The notes beneath the pieces are model-generated. The model searched no databases and was not told the origin of the DNA. It saw nothing but the letters and a program-made list of their open reading frames with translations. A program made the position numbers and the translations under genes. A DNA stretch of 63,684 nucleotides, filler included, from Klebsormidium nitens (taxonomy: Eukaryota; Plantae; Klebsormidiophyceae), in the NCBI GenBank assembly GCA_000708835.1. It is 3 parts of 3 records of this genome, joined end to end, with 100 filler letters (N's around TTAATTAATTAA, not from the genome) between each part and the next. Parts side by side here need not be neighbours in the genome. Positions count along the whole stretch, not along the records: positions 31,306 to 61,510 come from DF237771.1; 2 more parts are not named here. One strand, written 5' to 3'. This document shows, piece by piece, positions 32,393 to 55,700 of the stretch (position 1 is the stretch's first letter; each line of letters begins with the position of its first letter).

Positions 32393-35300
32393 ATGGGGGA
32401 TGACACCGACGAGGGTTGCAGGGTCTTTGTTGGGGGCCTCTCATGGAAGACCTCTAGCAAGGGCCTTCAGGATGCTTTCGCCACGTACGGAAGGGTCCTT
32501 GATGCTAAGGTGCACGGTCCTACCTACCATTACACCTCCTCAGCATTGAGCAATATTCCATTCTTGGCTAGCTGGGGATTTTCTGCTTCTCTACGATGTC
32601 TGGTTTGCGTCTGACCCGCGTGTGATCAGCGATAAGATCAACTATTGTGTCCACTTCCTTGATGGCAACCGATGGGAACGATGAACCTGAAAGGAGGCAG
32701 CTTATGGATGCATGATTCACAGTCCATCACGATTGAGTTTGACGACTATTGCAAGTGAAGACGATAGGTTTGATTGCTGGTAAAGAGGTAAATGTGTCCT
32801 GCTCACATCAGTAACTTTGGAGGATAGGGTGTTAGCCTGCGGCCACTATCTGAAGAAGAATACAGAGCAGGACCATGAAAGCGGAAACCTCATGTTTGCA
32901 GGTTGTCTGTGATCATCAGAGCGGCAGATCCAGGGGCTTTGGCTTCGTGACGTTCAGGGACAAGGGGTCTGTGCAAGCCGCGATCAAGCACTTGGATGCG
33001 CTGCAGCTGGATGGCCGGAGGGTTACTGTCAGAAGAGCGCGTCCCAGGGGGACAGAAAGGCAGGAGAACAATACGCGGCTGGAAGATGGAGGCAAGGGGG
33101 GACGCGGTGCTGAAAGGGGTTGCTGGTGAGCACCTGGGCCTTATGGTGTCTCAATCCAGAGAGGTTGGAGTACTTGTTTTGTTCTATCCGACAGCTTATA
33201 GCCCTGTTAGGCATGATTCAGGTTGCTCTTCTCAGGGTTTTGCGCAGGATGCTTGTTTGCTCGATTTCAGAGCCTCTTCTACTGCCGGCTCTCATGAGAC
33301 TGGGCTCTTTCTATCTTGGGCAAGCTTATAAATGTATGTTGTTAAGATAAGCCTCAATGGAAGTTCTCTGCTTGTGCAGCCACAAGTGCGGCGCCCGGGG
33401 TCACTATGCTCATGGATGCCACTCGGGCGCTGGAGGTGGGGTGGGGGGGGCTAATAGAGGCGGTGGAGAATCTGGCGGTGGCAGTGGCTACGGAGGGCTT
33501 CGCAGGTGACAGGATTACACTTTGTGCGATGGAGCTTTTCAGTTTCTGGGAATTAGTAGGCCGGTGCAGATGCTGCTTGGAAGAATTCAGATGATAGTCG
33601 AGTTGCTAGGGTTTTGAAGCTGTTCCATGGTATGGTTGCAGGCACATGTGGCGTCTGTCCTAATCAGCATTGTTGGGTTGAGTATCGGCTCTGTCTCAGA
33701 GAGTGATCTTTCCTCTGGGGCCTTGCTCCTGCTTATGGAGTTCTGGTAAATGTTTGTCTTTGCATATTTCATGGCGTTAGAAGAGTAGAACTTGCTTTTA
33801 CTGCTGGAGCATCCTTCTTGGTGACCTGTTTTGAAGCATTCCATGCCAATCCAACCTGGTCTCTTCACGCTTCCTTCGGAGGTTTTCAATTTGCTTTAGG
33901 TCCAATCCAGCGCTTCATATTGGTCCATCTGCTGGACAATAGCATGAAGGTGGGCTTGAGGTGATCCCGCAAGGTACGTCATGCTCAGCGTTGCGAACCC
34001 TTCCCGTTCCACTTGCAGCGCAGAGCAGTGTGAGGAGTACCACGCTGAACAGGAGGAGCGTTCGAGGGGCCCTCCCAGCTGGAGTGGCAAGAAGCGCGCA
34101 AGGGGCTACTCTAGCGAGGACGAGGCGGGGCAGGACAGAACGGGGCCATGTCGTGGCGGAGCGAAAGAGCGCGGGGGGGTAGCCACGCCAAGAAACTTCG
34201 AGTCGACGAGGGCCCCAAACCCCCTGGAGAGACGGCACCGGAAAGGATTGAGAGACGGCTGCCTTTCACGGGGAGGCCCAGAGGCGCGGAGGACGTGGGC
34301 GGCTGGCTGTTGCGCAAGTATGGGGCCACATTCAAGAAGGTGCACTCAAAGAAGCCGCTCGAGTCGCTTAGGGAACGGGGTCTTGACACTCGTGAAGGCA
34401 TCATCGAGCACCTCCGGATTGTTGGCCGGAAGGACGCCTTCCTGTCGTGGCTGGCGTGGGTGGCGAAGATTTACAGCAATTGGAGGAGGCGAACACCTTG
34501 GGTGGACGATCGGGACTACACAAGGCTGACTGTTCACCTGCTCCTCTTGGGCTGCCCGGGGTCAGGTCAGTGCTGCTGCACAGCTGGTCTGTGGGGCGTG
34601 AGCTTCAGCTCCCATCAGTGGTGATGCTAGGCCCTGCTGCAGACCTCCGCAAGATGCAAACACAGTCCGATCCAATCAAAGTGAAGGGGATTACGTCTGC
34701 AGGCATCCTCTCTGTCGTTATCTCGAGGTGCCCTCCCCCTTTGAGCAAGCCGCTCTAGTTCTTTACCCCTCTTGTTTGCAGGCAAGACTACGTTCTTGTA
34801 CCACAGCTTGCGCTGGCTGCAGGAGTGGCTTAGACCAGATACCCCAGAAGCGGAAGCGCACAGGCTGGACTATCTGGCGGGCGCGATCTACAGTGAGAGA
34901 GCAACGCGTCTAGAGAGCGGCCAGTTGAAGTTGGTGAAGGACTTGCTTGTTGCCCTGCACACAGCTGCTGGCAGCAACGGAGTTCACGCCTTTGGTGTCC
35001 TCAGGCAAGCTCGCATAGTCCCTCGTGGTTGTGCTTGCGCGTTGACTGAAGTCCATCGGTGGCGATCTGTTTTCTCGTTTTTCACAGCATCCTTCGCTCA
35101 GCTTCTGGCCCGTACCCGACATTTCGAAAAAGCGGCTTGATGTCTGAAAGGGGCACAGTCATTGTAAAGTCTTCCCGTCAGAAGGTTTGTGACGAACTTT
35201 TTCCTCTGCATCTGCAGGGTCGAGCAGACCAGCCTGACGGACACCGACGCCGAGAAGATGGTGCGCATCATAGGGCGCCACGCGCCAGCGCTGAGGCTGC

Positions 35301-38300
35301 TCTACTCACTGCTCAGCCCGCTCGATGGCCCCGCTGAGGATGAGTTCGAGGATGAGGAGGAGGAGCTCTTCAGCAGCTACTCGACCTTCTTAGGCGACTA
35401 CTGCGGGAGCGCCCCCGATTATGTTCAGGAGTGCATCTCCATTGAGGCCGTCCTTGCCTTCGCTCGGAGAGGGCTTGGAGTCCCCCAAGAGCAGCTGCTT
35501 CTGGTGCTGCTCTTGATTGACGAGGGCAACACTGCCAGCGGTGTCTTCCCAGTAAGCTCCAAAATGCGCCTCTTGTTGCCTACTAGGAAGCTCGTGAAAA
35601 GGTCGTTCGCTCCTTCTCAAGGAAACCGCCTGGTTTGTTGGGACCTGACTTCTGTTCCTGCGAAGGGACGTGTCGAGACCCCTCCGTGTGGTTTGCGCCT
35701 TATGATTGACGGCCATCGCATGTCGCACTGCGTTGCGTTGGCCCCTCCACTCTGCTTCCGATGATTGCGCAGGAGTCTTCTGCACTTACTGCAAGTTGCA
35801 CAGAGTTGCTAGAAGTTGGCCTGACGGCTAGGTGCTTCTCTCTATTTTGCAGCGGGAAAGCCCTTCCAAGACCAAGAAGCACCTAACGTGGTTGAAGGAG
35901 TTTCTGAGCGTGATCATCAGGACCAACAACGAGGCAAAGCGGGACCTGATCATCCCAACAACCGCCACCACGCGTCGGGCCTCGACCGATCTGGAGTGCA
36001 CCGCTAGCGGCCATGCTCAGGCTGCGTACGTCCCGCTCAAGGCCCTCTCCGTGCCCGAGCGGAAACGACTGATCTGCGACATCGCCACCCGGGTGGCCAA
36101 AGCCCTTAAGCGGTCCCGTGTCGGAGTCAAAGACCTGTCGATCGCCTTGAACGACGCCCTAGACTTCGTTGGCGGGAATCCCAGCCTGATGAGCTGGCTG
36201 CTGGAAGAGCTCGGAGGCCCTTCTTGGCATGAAGGTGCGTACCTCATCCCCTGTCAAAAGCACAGAACCTCGCAAGTAGGACTGAGAGTTTTTGTCTCTT
36301 GACAAGCCATGATTTCCGGATTAAGCGGTGTCAGTTTTAATATGCACCAGAGGCGCTTCTATGAACAATGTCTTCTTGGTGAAACTGGTGGGGATTGTAA
36401 GCTTCTTCTGAGTGGTCCGTTTGTGCAAGCGCTTCCAGTACAGCCTCTTTGATGTATGGTGAGGTCAGACTCCCGCATCCCGTCAACATCTTTAAATGAA
36501 CAGGCTATCAAGGATGGCGAAGTCGATTAATGCTTTCGTCACTGGCAGATTTGGAATCAGCAGTCGGGGCTTTCCCTTTTTTGGAAATGTTGGGATTCTT
36601 TTCGGAGGCTGAGAACTTCCCACTGTGCCACAGGTGTGCCTAGTATGATTGCGACCCCAACAATCAGCTTGTTCCGTGCAGATTTGGACCTGGTCGTAAA
36701 GAGCATGGACTACACTAAGTTGCTGGTGAAGCTGGGAAGGCTGAAGAAGGCAAAACGAGCGGCACGGAAAAGGAAAGGGGGAGCCGGAGAGGCGCCGCCG
36801 TTTACGGGCGCAATCAGACGGAAAAGCAAAACGGAAAGGAACTAGAGCGAGGCGTCCTCGGGGGCTTGCATCTGCACCTGCACGGGAGTGCGGATGTCAA
36901 GAAGATGTGGGCGGATCTGGTGCGGCACGCGGGGGGCCACGTGTGCCGGTCGCTGGAGCACGATTTGGCGCACGCGGTGCTGCTGGAACCGGGCGTTGAT
37001 GCGCCCTCGGAGCTGAAAGGCGCGGCATGGCGGGCCAAGATCGCTATCAAGGTGAGGTGGTCACATAGTTGGTTCAGTCTAGAAATCATCTCGGTCGACG
37101 AGCTTCGCAATCGTTCCGGAACAGGGAGGCAGAGGTTGCTTTGTTTCGCTCTGGTCGAGCGGGTTACACCGACTCACTAGAATACAACGTCAAGTTTCTA
37201 AGTTTCGCCATGCATGTCTGACACGCGGAACCTGTTTCTTTAGGCTTGGTTTCGATGAGTTTGACAAGTGATACTTCTTTTGTTTGGTCCGCCGTTCATC
37301 GACCACTATTTTTCCTTGTTTCCACCTCCCACATGTATAGAGCATTGCGCAGATTAAGATGATGCTAAAGAAAAAGCCAGAGTTCGTTTGAATGCTTCAA
37401 CTTTTCGTTCGAAGCCAGCCCATCCACATGGATCTCTTTATGAAACTCAGGAAAAGTGTATGCAGCCAAGTCAATGATAAGCTCCGACTAACAGAAAATA
37501 CCGCAACGTGGAAAAGTGATGCTCCGCACCCTACAACCACCCTAACCCCGAGAACCAGGTCGGTATCATCTATTGTAATCACTTTTCTGTATCTTTGTTG
37601 ACCAACATCTTTGTTTGCAGCCGTCCGTTGACGTTGTGCGAAGCACAAGCCGTTTGTGCGGCCCGCTTTTAAGGCGCATGGGTTTCAAGCCTCAGTTACC
37701 TTAACCACGTTTACAATGTGCTCTACTTGCTAACTTTTGCTGACGCTCGTTCCGTCCGCTCCGCAGACCCTGGATTGGGCCGTCGACGCTCTCCTGTCGG
37801 GCAGCCGCCCGACCGACTTTCCAAACCCGCCAAACCCCGACTAAACCCCCTCGCCGCCCCAAGCCGCAAAGGGCGACCAAGACAGCCCCAAGGATTCCCC
37901 AAAGAGGCGGAAATCCAGCCTTGGGTCCAGCGTCAAAGGCAAAGACCCGGAAAAGGCCGGCGAGCCAGATCGCGTGCCCCGGGAGGAAACTTTGCTGGAA
38001 GGGGGACCTGCCCGGGAGGGTCTGGGCCTGCGGGAGCCCCCCCCTCTGCCACCGCACGCTCTCGTGGCGCCCGGGGTTACGGACGCTCCTCCGGCGAAGC
38101 GGACGTACTTTTCGGCAGTGACGAGCGCCGGCGAGGGTCACCAGATTGGGGACGCGGCAGATATTCAAGCTGACGGAAGCGCGAGCGCGCGCGTCGTCCA
38201 GCTGATGTCACTCTGGGAGGCGTCCGGGATTGGCGGGGAGGGGTGTATGCGGGCCACGTGTCGGCTGCTCATGCGCCCCCGAGAGACTGACTTTCCGTTT

Positions 38301-38516
38301 TTTGGGGGGCGTGGTTTGGGGGCTAACCAAGGGTCAGCGGAAAGTGGTTTGCAGGAGGTGTATCTGTCCAGCGTGGTGCAAGAAATGGATGTGTCGGAGT
38401 TGAGGAAAAAGGTGCACGTGGCGAGGAGCACGGGAGGTGCTGGTCCGAGTGCTGGTTTCCTATGTAGATTCTTCTACGATGCGGAGCGGGAGATCTTGCA
38501 GAAACTCGAAGTTTAA
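32393..38516 (+). CDS. Multidomain protein: RRM, CCHC zinc knuckle/Gly-rich, P-loop NTPase, BRCT, BAH. The reading frame is interrupted (pseudogene, assembly errors or more than one gene).
   Basis: Exons about 32393-32509, 32901-33125, 33380-33505, 34019-34565, 34782-35004, 35218-35551, 35853-36234, 36682-37051, 37767-38516. RNP2 VFVGGL, RNP1 RGFGFVTF; CHKCGARGHYAHGC; Walker A GCPGS|GKT; Walker B LLLIDEG; BRCT-like GGLHLHLHG...WADLVRHAGG...TLDWAVDAL; BAH-like VVQLMSLWE...CRLLMRPRET...EVYLS...FLCRFFYD. The join needs two frameshifts (about 34175 and 36780) and has an in-frame TAA at 37842-37844. Confidence 0.6.
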
Positions 38517-39552
38517 CGGAGAGATCGGCCACGAGAGACCGTTGTCGCCTCTGCGGGGGCAGCAAAAGAATCAAGCGCTGAGTCTTTGACGGAACAGAGG
38601 ACTTAGCTGTGCCAGCGCCATCCTCCACAATCCTTGATCCGAACGTTTTGCCATCACGTTGAAGCCGCTCGGTATGATCGATTGCCGGATGTTGTGACTG
38701 TACGTACCATGTTCACCATTGGATTCACTTGCATGAATGCTTGAGGACTTACGCGAATGCGGAACGCTAATCTGCTTCATGGCGGCACGTACATACAGCT
38801 GCCAGCATCACGTACAACATTCTAAATCTACGCCTGCATGCATGTCACAATTTGATCGAAGATGCAGATCATCGAAGATGTAGATACACATAGCTACCTC
38901 ATTAATGAGTGGCATGTCGAACTGTATAATATACACACAAGCATATAATGATAAGCACGAATTATGATCAAATTGCAGAATTTCAGTGCACGCGTACGCG
39001 CAGCAGCGCCATATGGCCGGACTGCCCGCACGTCACATATGCATGATCGAGTGTATACACTGAGCCTGACCGGCGGCCGCAATCTGCACGGCTTAGTCCC
39101 TTGACGGTCATGTCGGGGATTAAAACCTCCGGCCTGGCTGTGTCTGCATGAATGGAGCGAGCTGTCACTTGAAACATGCATACCGTCATCGATGCACATT
39201 GCACTCTGATGACTGAGGGACAGCGGCCCGACGCCGCTCAGTGTTCGAGCTGGACGGGTTGGCACCAGCGCATCCACATACGGAGCGCGATCAAGTCAGC
39301 CTCAGTAAGTGCCTTGATCAAAGTGTTCTCACGTGTCCAAGGTCCAAAATCGAACCATGCTTTGCTCAAAAGCCTTGCTTGCCTTGACCCTATGCCATGC
39401 ACATGAGATCCCGCATCACGACCGAGCAATCTTATATCCACGGCACGTAGCCCGCACAAGGCCTACGAAGCAGGTGGCTGCACCTGCCAGCACACTTACC
39501 GTCAGAATCGAAAGAGCTACCCGGATTGACTAACAAACACTGGCCCCCTTTG

Positions 39553-46786
<7,234 letters not shown>

Positions 46787-52786: not shown

Positions 52787-55700
52787 ATGCTCGCGAGTCT
52801 GCACGGGTCACCGCAGCAGTCTCAGGGATGGGATGCATTCCATCCCGGCACCCTTAACCTCTCCTTTCCCTATGGTCACATCGAGCCTCTGAAGCAATGG
52901 CAGCCAAAGGCTTACGCAAAAAGATTGGAGGATGTGAAGCCTGACAAGAAAAAGGGAGCCAGCAGAATGCAGGTCAAGCGCGAGGCACAGAAGGCCATGC
53001 TGGCCAGGTGCAAATCGAACAACTCTGCAGGCCAGTCCTTCGCAATGCTGCCGCCCCCTTACGCTCCCCTGGGGTTTGTCGGCAGTTCCACAGGGGACGG
53101 GGCCCAATGTGACTCCTTGAAGCGCAAGTATGATCAGGCTTTGCCAGCATTGGATGAGCAGCTCTCAAGCAAGCGCTCCCTAGTGGAGAGCGCGTGGCCA
53201 GTGGAGTTAGCAGGCTTCGCTGCGGGTCAGAGCGTGTGGCGGTTGCGGGGTGGAGGGCAGGCAGCGCAGGATGAGGCCTCAGAGGATCCCCCTGCAGAGG
53301 GGGGGACCCAGAATCAGGCGGAAGCTGAGGGGAGCCAGCAGGCAGGCCAGCGGGTAGACGCATTGATCTCTGAGGTTGCAAGTATGATGGAGAGTGCACA
53401 GAGGGGGGGACAAGCAAGTGAGGTTATGCTCCGCCTCAACAGGTTGGAAAGCATCCCCTCTCTCCCGCGGTTCAACAGTCTAGAGCTGGCAGACGAGATG
53501 TTTGCAGACATCCTCAAGTGGGATCTTCCCAAGGGAGAAGAGCGTACAGTGGAGGTGAAGGAGGGGGAGGTTGGGAGGACAAGGGGGGGCGGAGTGGAGA
53601 GCGACGATGCGCAGGTGGAGGAGTTTCTGAAGTCCCTGGACCCCGCTTTGGCAAACCGGGAGCCGGTCGCGATCCAGGATCAGTTGCAGAAGTCGGCTGC
53701 GGAGGGAAAAGATGGGGCCGAGGGGAAGCAGCGCGCGGGGGCGAGGCCTGTATCCGTGCGGGGGGGTGCGAAAGATTTAGGCGATGCTGGAGAGAACAAG
53801 TCGGAGGGTACAGCGTCGGAGCAGGCTTCGCAAGATCAGGCTGCAGCGGGGGAAGGGTTGAAACACTCTGGCAGCGGCGAAGCCGCTCAGCCATCAAAGC
53901 TGCAGAGCGCAGAGGCAGTCCCTGGGAAGCAGTCCGGTGGAAAGCCCGAGGTGCAGCCCAAGCAGGGCCCTGCCATCTCACAAAAGCCGATGGTGCGGTC
54001 CCCAAGGGCGGGAGAGGAGAAACCTAGGCAGCTAGTGCGTCCCAGTCTGGACATCCTTGCGCAGGCGTCCGCCAGTTTCGGTCCCACGAGCCCTGTAGCC
54101 AGCAAGGACAGCCTGGAGTCCCCAGAGTCACCGATCCTGAGCAGCCTGGGGGGGGGGCCGCGGCGCCCCAAGCTCACCCCCCCGCAGCAGGAGAAGTTGC
54201 GGGGGTTTGCAGCCAAGGTGCACTGGAATTGGGGGGCGGCGGAGGGGACTGGCGAGGCGCGCCAGCTGTGTGCTGAGTTGGGGATTGACATGAGGCAGAT
54301 GAAGCGTTGGGTGGAAAGTCACCGACCCAAGGACGTTGCGCCGCCGCCTCCTCAGGCGGTGCCGTTCATGGGGTGGGGGGTGCCACCAGGGGTGGGGATG
54401 ATGAATCCAGCCTACATGTCCTATATGGCAGGAAGCCCGATGGCTTTTCCGGGGGCGTGGCCTGGCATGCCCCGCCCCCCCCTGGGGGATGGGTCGTGGG
54501 GAGGGGGGCCACCCATGGGCCCCATGGGCCAGCCGTTCAACCCCACAATGCAGGCGCCGTTTACTCAGCCGTTGCTTGGGCCCAGTTTCCCGGGACCGCC
54601 GTTCTTGCCGGGGGGTTTTGCCAGCACAGGGTTTGGTGGGGGAGCGCCAGGGGGGCCTCTGAGCGCCCCAGCGGCCACCCCCCTGAATGTGGATGAGAAT
54701 CAAGAGTTGGTGGCATCAGCTGAGGCGCTGGGGAAGCTGTTGGGCGACCGGGTGAACACCATCCCCCCTGAAAAGTTGAAGGAGATCCTGGCGGCCTGGA
54801 TGGCGCACAAGCGCAACAAGCGCGAGCAGGAAACAGTCCCGGCAGCCCGGGAGGCGCCACTTTCCGGCGCGGGGGGGACCAAGCGCAAGGAGCCCGAGCC
54901 CCTAGCGCACCCCCCTGCCGATGAGCCGTCGGAGGGTAGCCTGTTGCAGTTTTCGATCCCGTCACTTGAGCGGGGGCTCTCCAACGCGCCCTCGATCTCG
55001 ACCCTGCTAGCTGAGGAACTAGCGTCGGCAGCTGCGGAGGACGGGGGGCTTGGCAAAGATGGCGATGGAGCCCCGGGGGGGGCGTTTAAGGGGCAGGGGG
55101 CGAGCCGGGATCCCTCGCTGAGCGTGCTCTTGCAGGAGATTGGGGGGGCGATGGAAGAAGCACCGAAGCGGACGATGGGACCGCTCGAGAGGCAGGTGTT
55201 TGGCGTGGACGAGGACAATATGCAGATGGGGCCAGCGCCGGAGTCAGGTGAAGTTCCTGTGAAGTTGTGGGCTTAAGCTGTTGCGTGTGATTGGTTAATT
55301 TGGTGATGTGGCATAGTCTGCTCTGATTGCTGCAGCTTCATCTCTCCAGCAGGCCGCGCTTTTGCCTCCTGCAAAGTAGCTGCAACTTAGAAGGGTTGTT
55401 GATTGCCAATTAGATCGAAGGTCTGGCAAAACATTGCACAGCCAGCACTTTGTTAAGGCAAACCTTGTAGACAGGAGGTCTTGGAGGTCTTCGGTATCCA
55501 TTCTCTTCATTCCTCTTCCTCTTCAATCAGGCATGGAACCGCCAGGATGTGTGCCCGTGCTTCAAGGTTTTGAAGTGTCGTACTTTTTTCATTGGTGTTC
55601 CTTGGGAACACCAAAGTCTGCTGTATGATCCTTGACTGCTGAGAATTGACATCCAAACCTTGACCTTTGTGCAGGCGATGACGAATCCGCATCCTCTTCC

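Follow-up and report, generated by a model that had tools for sequence, protein, structure and literature searches.

Crinkler (CR) proteins, as described by Zhang et al. (2016) and summarised in two later reports (PMC5289972, PMC12957317), combine an N-terminal header with a P-loop nucleoside triphosphatase (NTPase), a helix-turn-helix (HTH) and a nuclease of the restriction-endonuclease (REase) kind, and homologues have been reported in chlorophyte algae and land plants (PMC12957317). Here we analyze a locus of Klebsormidium nitens, at positions 32393 to 38516 of a window of 63,684 nucleotides taken from assembly GCA_000708835.1 (three parts joined with filler; all coordinates count along this whole stretch). 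The locus lies on scaffold DF237771.1, the entire 30,205 bp of which form the piece 31306-61510. The initial annotation had read it as a single protein with an RNA recognition motif (RRM), a CCHC zinc knuckle, a P-loop NTPase, a BRCT and a BAH domain, or else as a chimera of an RZ-1 gene with an NTPase-BRCT-BAH gene. Our analysis indicates that it is probably a lineage-specific chimera in which an RZ-1 paralogue is followed by a truncated NTPase and then by the out-of-frame remnant of a tandem-BRCT and BAH gene. A chimera was the right kind of event, but it was drawn in the wrong place: its sources are three (RZ-1-like, NTPase paralogue, tandem-BRCT plus BAH) rather than two, the join between NTPase and BRCT is an out-of-frame breakpoint in the DNA, and that between RZ-1 and NTPase is spliced in frame.

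Each part of the locus resembles a described system and departs from it. The first module has the order of RRM, CCHC zinc knuckle and Gly-rich region seen in RZ-1 (class IV glycine-rich) proteins, and land-plant RZ1A proteins were among its matches; it differs in that its knuckle has diverged and its stop is spliced out, with about 550 more residues after it. The NTPase shares with the AAA+ and STAND ATPases (Orc1/Cdc6, TnsC/MuB, PAB2304/ATPase_2, NB-ARC/NACHT) a Walker A of the form GxxGxGKT, a Walker B of the form hhhhDE, a TATTR strand after the Walker B and a GGNPSL lid motif, together with weak fold matches and sub-threshold Pfam matches to AAA_16, AAA_22 and NACHT. Unlike them, it has about 170 residues, including an acidic insert, between Walker A and Walker B, and this copy carries neither a winged helix nor a repeat sensor domain. 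Four relatives of the NTPase (P0002, P0003, P0007 and P0016) are Crinkler-like in having a variable N-terminus, the NTPase, a helical region and an REase-like C-terminus; however, a match to the Pfam Crinkler family (PF20147) was not reported on them, their structural scores are all weak, and the copy at this locus lacks the nuclease and has an RNA-binding module as its header. Finally, ORC1 had been brought up for comparison, with its BAH domain before its AAA+ domain, the reverse of the order here. The locus does hold a BAH domain and an AAA+-like ATPase, the model of which matches Orc1/Cdc6 best, but these two occupy separate reading frames and no common translation product contains them, and the analogy fails because BAH and ATPase derive from different ancestral genes.

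Results

Splicing and reading frame of the locus

RNA contigs from four runs of four studies were placed on positions 32650-38649. Of the words sampled from the stretch, about half are present in twenty public RNA runs, which matches the expectation for spliced RNA. Between exon 1 and the last exon, all four contig sets agree on eight GT/GC..AG joints. Written as last and first exon base, these include 33125/33380, which completes the zinc knuckle; 33505/34019, which links the RZ-1 exons to the NTPase exons; 34565/34782, which completes the Walker A; 35004/35218; 35551/35853; 36234/36682; and 37051/37767. Loose contig ends at 32900 read into exon 1 and place the first intron at 32510-32901, and in one run a single contig spans exon 1 to 47 nt beyond the last junction. 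The splices that had been proposed for the knuckle and for the Walker A, both GT..AG, are exact. Intron 35005-35217, which the initial annotation overlooked, is of the GC-AG class (CAG/GCAAGC ... TGCAG/G) and is used in all four contig sets; the remaining seven are GT-AG, and a (T/C)GCAG/ ending is common to all eight acceptors. Contig depth is 42-90 for the spliced form as compared with about 2-3 within the intron after 33505, so the fused form is the main one in these RNA data. Scaffold misassembly was rejected because RNA contigs of four studies cross both junctions.

The annotation also missed that the locus has public gene models. At 100% identity, exon 7 matches the public protein GAQ91630.1 / KFL_008220010 (679 aa, 'hypothetical protein'), whose gene call corresponds to 32393-36845, and a second model, GAQ91631.1 / KFL_008220020 (253 aa, 36905-38516), is labelled 'BAH domain-containing protein' in UniRef. 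The locus is already public as two genes, without an NTPase or BRCT call. In our searches the exons were used singly, with P0001 and P0026, both of them public proteins, as joined references.

A third feature that had escaped notice is a missing nucleotide. The G-run at 34166-34172 has seven G in the assembly and eight in the RNA of all four runs. With eight G, the frame of the RRM, CCHC and Gly-rich exons passes through exon 4 into the NTPase frame and extends over 2118 nt, or 705 codons and a stop, from ATG 32393 to TAG 36843-45. With eight G, moreover, an ORF from ATG 34148 is only 11 codons long, and ahead of exon 6 the NTPase frame contains no Met; the NTPase is therefore translatable only from the RZ-1 start. 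Because one G is missing from the assembly, the public 679-aa model sidesteps the frameshift by an artificial intron and carries about 40 residues (209-248) in the wrong frame; the conserved beginning of the NTPase module is also missing from it. The RNA data support a fusion of RRM, CCHC and NTPase, from which a 705-aa protein is presumably made.

The same data speak against a single protein of five domains. The open frame stops at 36845, and, contrary to what had been assumed, the five parts do not share one frame: the TAG at 36843-45, a -1 frame change and the TAA at 37842-44 are all present in RNA contigs, without indel or substitution at either stop.

The RNA-binding module

The first three exons, like all others of the locus, are on the plus strand. 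The 39 codons of exon 1 (32393..32509) begin with the start codon and encode the RRM's N-terminal half (Pfam RRM_1); exon 2 (32902..33125) encodes the C-terminal half (RRM_1, E=1.9e-9) and a Gly/Arg linker and opens the knuckle with its first Cys codons; and exon 3 (33380..33505) completes the CCHC knuckle, adds the Gly-rich tail and ends in the donor CAG/GTGACA. Both halves of the RRM were found exon by exon, and on the joined protein P0001 RRM_1 scores 62.9 bits against a threshold of 20.7. The zinc knuckle, C-X2-C-X4-H-X4-C (CHKCGARGHYAHGC), is assembled across the 33125/33380 splice; it scores 17.1 bits with zf-CCHC_3, below the 27-bit threshold, and a Pfam zf-CCHC match was not reported, but it aligns with the knuckle of P0030.

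P0030 is a stand-alone K. nitens RZ-1-like protein of 156 aa, with RRM_1 at 85.6 bits and zf-CCHC at 36.4 bits. It is 53% identical to the module studied here and has identical intron positions, three coding exons and the same 39-codon first exon. Furthermore, both finish in identical letters, CGC AGG TGA CA. The ancestral stop, TGA at 33506-33508, overlaps the donor of exon 3, and splicing removes it, while an unspliced read through the 33505 donor gives an RZ-1-like open reading frame (ORF) of 157 aa. The module agrees with the RZ-1 type in its N-terminal RRM, but not in the small stand-alone size (about 150-300 aa) of that type, as the dominant RNA form has 705 codons.

These observations raise the question of whether the 157-aa protein is the only product that matters, the long RNA being a read-through by-product of two dead gene fragments. 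The ancestral stop is intact immediately behind the donor, and two runs have contigs of low depth over a portion of intron 33506-33850. The NTPase lacks its presumed effector nuclease, the features of the mRNA would predict nonsense-mediated decay, and debris is obvious at the locus in the form of a nonsense codon and an out-of-frame junction. However, the spliced form is dominant by the depths given above, the 705 codons are open over seven splice junctions with NTPase motifs that have stayed intact, and a separate, better-conserved RZ-1 gene is already present in the genome. On balance we consider this account unlikely.

The NTPase module and its relatives

The NTPase is encoded by exons 4 to 7 and the beginning of exon 8. 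Exon 4 (34019..34565) carries a charged linker, strand beta1 and the GCPGS of the Walker A, with family homology starting at about 34304; exon 5 (34782..35004) carries the (G)KT of the Walker A and a helical segment; exon 6 (35218..35551) carries the acidic insert and the Walker B LLLIDEG, which is present as predicted, at 35505-35525 (alignment A1); exon 7 (35853..36234) carries the family core with TWLKxFLS, IIPxTATTR and the GGNPSL (GxP-like) lid motif; and the 5' part of exon 8 (36682..36745) carries the last NTPase-family residues (DLDLVVKSMDYTKLL...) in the NTPase frame, here called frame A. Walker A (GCPGS/G/KT) and Walker B are in the correct order, and both are kept in P0002 and P0016.

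Searching with exon 7 yielded 25 relatives, among them K. nitens KFL_007660030 (P0002, 1913 aa), a K. subtile transcript (P0003) and two Coccomyxa proteins (P0007 and P0016), together with many short fragments. The motifs of the copy studied here are all intact, and it is 49-59% identical to its paralogues. Exons 4-7 map onto separate blocks of L004, the P0002 locus, exon 5 among them; the block limits agree, and the Walker A is split there as well; tblastn against L004 aligns from WLLRKYG onward. These shared blocks identify the copy as a DNA-level paralogue, and a retrocopy origin was rejected, since the intron positions are common to the KFL_007660030 locus. The first 15 or so codons of exon 8, in frame A, align with P0002 and P0003 (A1) and with the start of exon 8 of L004; BLASTP of the 53-residue frame-A tail against P0003 gave no alignment, and the homology of those first residues is read from the multiple alignment and the L004 exon start.

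Full-length relatives extend 500-700 residues further than the copy at this locus. Their C-terminal domain has a conserved E...D...QSK and an alpha-beta-beta-beta-alpha-beta topology, and the fold matches of its model are nearly all PD-(D/E)xK nucleases (HamA, Cap4, Avs3/4, Can2, MspJI, FokI, Shedu), although weak (Z of at most 5.4). The N-termini of the family vary: that of P0002 is ubiquitin-like, and a helix-hairpin-helix-like one was also seen. The ORF of the locus, in contrast, ends 54 codons past the exon of the lid motif and has no nuclease, so that it does not encode an NTPase-REase polypeptide.

Structure comparison placed the NTPase model near Orc1/Cdc6, ORC subunits, TnsC, PAB2304, ZAR1 (an NLR) and Apaf-1, at Z of 5.5-7.9, and the lists of fold matches were homogeneous (ORC/Cdc6, TnsC, NLR, Clp, HslU). 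Foldseek returned AAA+ matches only, at E-values of at least 0.016, and in the ESM Atlas the top TM-score by query (0.48) belonged to a 'Crinkler family protein' cluster. Protein-language-model features of exon 7 pointed to STAND-type families, as a lead only. Sequence searches were less informative. Pfam, run exon by exon, gave no match on the NTPase exons and no family-level match on P0002, P0003, P0007 or P0016; sequence and profile searches of the PDB with the NTPase exons and with profiles of the NTPase and C-terminal families gave nothing significant; PADLOC defence models gave P-loop noise only; and a metagenome scan with exon 7 found one locus, 28% identical. These relatives make up an unannotated green-algal family whose NTPase is probably AAA+/STAND-like and whose C-terminal domain is, on weak evidence, PD-(D/E)xK-like. 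By its layout this family is probably of Crinkler type, in the sense of the closest known kind and not of an established membership. The NTPase of the locus may still hydrolyse nucleotide.

The BRCT and BAH segments and the breakpoint

BRCT-like sequence occurs at about 36851-37051 and 37767-37810, and BAH-like sequence at 38094-38513. The 3' part of exon 8 (36746..37051) comprises an inter-BRCT linker and the second BRCT from beta1 to beta4, in a frame (frame B) that is -1 relative to frame A; the last exon (37767..38516), also in frame B, comprises the final BRCT helix (37767 to about 37810), the TAA at 37842-37844, a Pro-rich linker and the BAH segment, with a stop at 38514-16. Frame B is open only from 36719, so that the two frames overlap by about 125 nt. 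Its first ATG, at 36905, falls after BRCT strand beta1, and although the frame crosses the last splice, the in-frame TAA precedes the BAH. Codon use is positive for both frames over 36720-36842, a purine-rich stretch, and hence is not decisive there.

The exon with the BRCT gave no Pfam or PDB match. However, it is 74% identical in amino acids to P0151 and 44% to metagenome contig L002; P0151 aligns with P0152 of bean, in which the corresponding repeat scores 54.3 bits as BRCT_3, and protein-language-model features of the 3' part of exon 8 fell in BRCT clusters. The BAH segment scores 19.9-20.9 bits against a threshold of 30.8, over profile positions 6-120/121, and matches the BAH of DNMT1 weakly. 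The peptide of the last exon retrieved two orthologues with uninterrupted frames (P0027 and P0028, E ~1e-51); P0028 is 48% identical to it (E=5.9e-51), and its BAH, at 32.9 bits, is above the threshold. The BRCT-like and BAH-like segments are real by orthology, as had been proposed, and appear from these comparisons to be the 3' end of a tandem-BRCT and BAH gene.

Intact versions of that gene are present in L002 (5528-9878) and in the Logan contig L003 (858-5150), which carries the closer relative P0151. These relatives have a long low-complexity N-terminus, a C-terminal tandem BRCT, the second repeat of which is split by an intron, and then the BAH. In L002 the exon upstream of the BAH exon is a 1038-codon ORF ending in two BRCT repeats, the first of which is above the BRCT and BRCT_2 thresholds. 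The frame-B exon corresponds to the second repeat of such a pair, as found in tandem-BRCT proteins (BRCT_2 + BRCT_3, bean PHAVU_005G018200); relative to the bean pair, the Klebsormidium-like relatives have a BAH after the two BRCT repeats, whereas of these K. nitens keeps at this position only the second BRCT and the BAH, which are out of frame and interrupted by a stop. About 890 first codons of the tandem-BRCT exon, including the first BRCT, are absent here. No full-length K. nitens tandem-BRCT protein was found among proteins of 571-1816 aa, a length range that leaves its absence unproven. We know of no described family with a tandem BRCT pair and a BAH. PHAVU_005G018200 of bean, a BRCT-domain protein, is distantly related to the BRCT pair in the L002/L003 gene.

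Comparison with L003 locates the breakpoint. L003 is collinear with the locus from 36746 on, with 82% nucleotide identity in the BRCT exon and 80% in the last exon, and the collinearity extends to the downstream minus-strand kinase gene (two exon blocks, 92-96%); upstream of about 36746, L003 and the locus share no similarity. The last exon of L003 is intact and has GAA opposite the TAA at 37842-44. The switch from NTPase to BRCT falls within exon 8, at about 36740-36746, in the purine-rich stretch and out of frame. A prokaryote-type scan for promoters and terminators at the junction found nothing, a type of scan that is not relevant to a eukaryote.

The public models would have the locus as two independent genes, KFL_008220010 ending at about 36845 and KFL_008220020 starting from its own promoter at about 36700-36900 and reading BRCT and BAH from ATG 36905, in which case the RNA contigs would merge two overlapping transcripts. 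De Bruijn contigs are indeed unable to separate overlapping transcripts, depth is somewhat higher downstream, the BRCT and BAH codons appear constrained, and coding-like codon use is clear in the frame after the TAA. Against this, the position of ATG 36905 would leave an incomplete BRCT domain. To bypass the TAA, the 253-aa model calls for an intron of about 120 nt that is absent from the RNA contigs: all four runs are continuous there (e.g. 37782-38194, 37765-38266), and if no such intron is removed, the ORF that begins at 36905 is 74 codons long. Furthermore, the RNA contigs gave no report of loose ends or of start pile-ups in the vicinity of 36746-36905. We regard two independent genes as decidedly unlikely.

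That all five domains might reach one protein after all, by a -1 frameshift between 36719 and 36845 with read-through of the TAA or by a rare frame-restoring isoform, is barely credible: frame B is exactly -1 to frame A over their overlap, AG at 36718-19 would by inspection yield frame B if used as an acceptor, and the BRCT/BAH part shows constraint, yet the offset stems from a DNA breakpoint between unrelated genes and not from an evolved recoding site, no slippery heptamer of the form X XXY YYZ was found in frame A by inspection, the candidate acceptor (ACTAAG/) lacks the TGCAG/ consensus of the eight used acceptors, the TAA is a plain GAA-to-TAA change in the Pro-rich linker, and the contigs show the major form only. 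Both the -1 frameshift signal and the alternative acceptor at 36720 were rejected on inspection.

Neighbouring features

Downstream of the locus, on the minus strand, 39553-46723 holds a kinase of the SnRK1/AMPK type (Pkinase with KA1/AdenylateSensor; public model of 542 aa), and two of its exon blocks, those matched in L003, show far higher conservation than the BRCT/BAH gene does. Positions 43823-44937, which fall within the kinase model, form a tandem array (period of about 100 bp; about 10 copies, 68% match; higher-order periods of 182 and 301) that has a match at the end of L003 too. At 43207-43818, ORFs carry a duplicated kinase-exon peptide, FDDEN(I/F)PNLFKK(I/T)KVGLC. Further along, 52787-55276 on the plus strand is an intron-free ORF of 829 codons, 63-66% G+C, of low complexity and rich in Gly, Pro, Ala and Glu.

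Discussion

The reading that we favor, a chimera of three sources, gives the following arrangement, in which splicing, frames, breakpoint, descent and stops are shown and the protein product is predicted. A paralogue of the RZ-1 type would provide the promoter, the start codon and the first three exons, with RRM, CCHC knuckle and Gly-rich tail. Its last codons and stop (CGC AGG TGA) also serve as the splice donor CAG/GT, and in most transcripts this donor is spliced to the first exon of the downstream NTPase fragment, so that the stop is bypassed. The NTPase copy has kept Walker A, Walker B, TATTR and GGNPSL and has lost everything past the lid. At about 36740-36746 the NTPase gene is joined in DNA to the last 1.3 exons of the tandem-BRCT and BAH gene and, the join being out of frame, about 33 wrong-frame basic codons would be read before the stop at 36845. 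The main product is predicted to have 705 residues, comprising the RRM, the zinc knuckle, the Gly-rich region, a linker and the NTPase, while the second BRCT and the BAH, which lack a start codon and contain one nonsense codon, would be a recent relic within the 3' untranslated region.

Several observations weigh against this reading or limit it. A stop codon far ahead of the last exon junction normally triggers nonsense-mediated decay; the TAG lies 206 nt before that junction, yet the transcript is well represented. Downstream contigs have 1.2-1.5 times the depth of the upstream contig, which could reflect an extra internal start or merely 3' bias. The RNA evidence consists of assembled contigs, to which transcript starts, transcript ends and rare isoforms are invisible, and a contig that spans two genes does not prove one molecule. 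A comparison of the locus with L003 gives dN/dS values of 0.37 in the BRCT exon, 0.42 in the linker and 0.24 in the BAH. When L002 is taken as outgroup, the unique residue changes number 22 at the locus and 14 in L003, a difference that is not significant (chi-square 1.8); either the damage is recent or the remnant is still somehow constrained. With regard to the NTPase family, both fold models are of low confidence (pLDDT 64.9 for the NTPase and 53.2 for the C-terminal domain), and the Pfam scores are all under threshold, both on P0001 (AAA_22 16.8, NACHT 13.9 and AAA_33 18.5 bits) and on P0016 (AAA_16 20.7 bits). The likeness to Crinklers is one of described layout and weak structure scores, not of sequence comparison.

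As to the role of the fusion, the RNA-binding module may be a swapped-in N-terminal header that takes the NTPase to RNA. An RNA-tethered NTPase appears the most likely role; otherwise the locus would be a young, possibly neutral chimera. A more specific version, in which the 705-aa fusion works as an RNA-tethered or RNA-sensing switch without a nuclease, RRM and knuckle having replaced the header of a conflict NTPase of Crinkler type, we hold to be rather improbable.

These results bear on the gene models of K. nitens and on the families involved. They correct a tempting domain architecture, in that BAH and ATPase are here not one chromatin enzyme, and they correct two public models, KFL_008220010 for its wrong-frame residues and KFL_008220020 for an intron unseen in the RNA contigs. 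The K. nitens reference strain carries a truncated tandem-BRCT and BAH copy where a relative is intact at the same position, and a green-algal family that may join an NTPase to a nuclease-like domain, so far unannotated, is defined. On the reading favored here, the locus would be a clear case of gene birth in a model charophyte, made possible by a splice donor that overlaps a stop codon. If the fusion does work in the manner just described, it would represent natural header swapping in a family of Crinkler type, caught in a charophyte soon after its origin.

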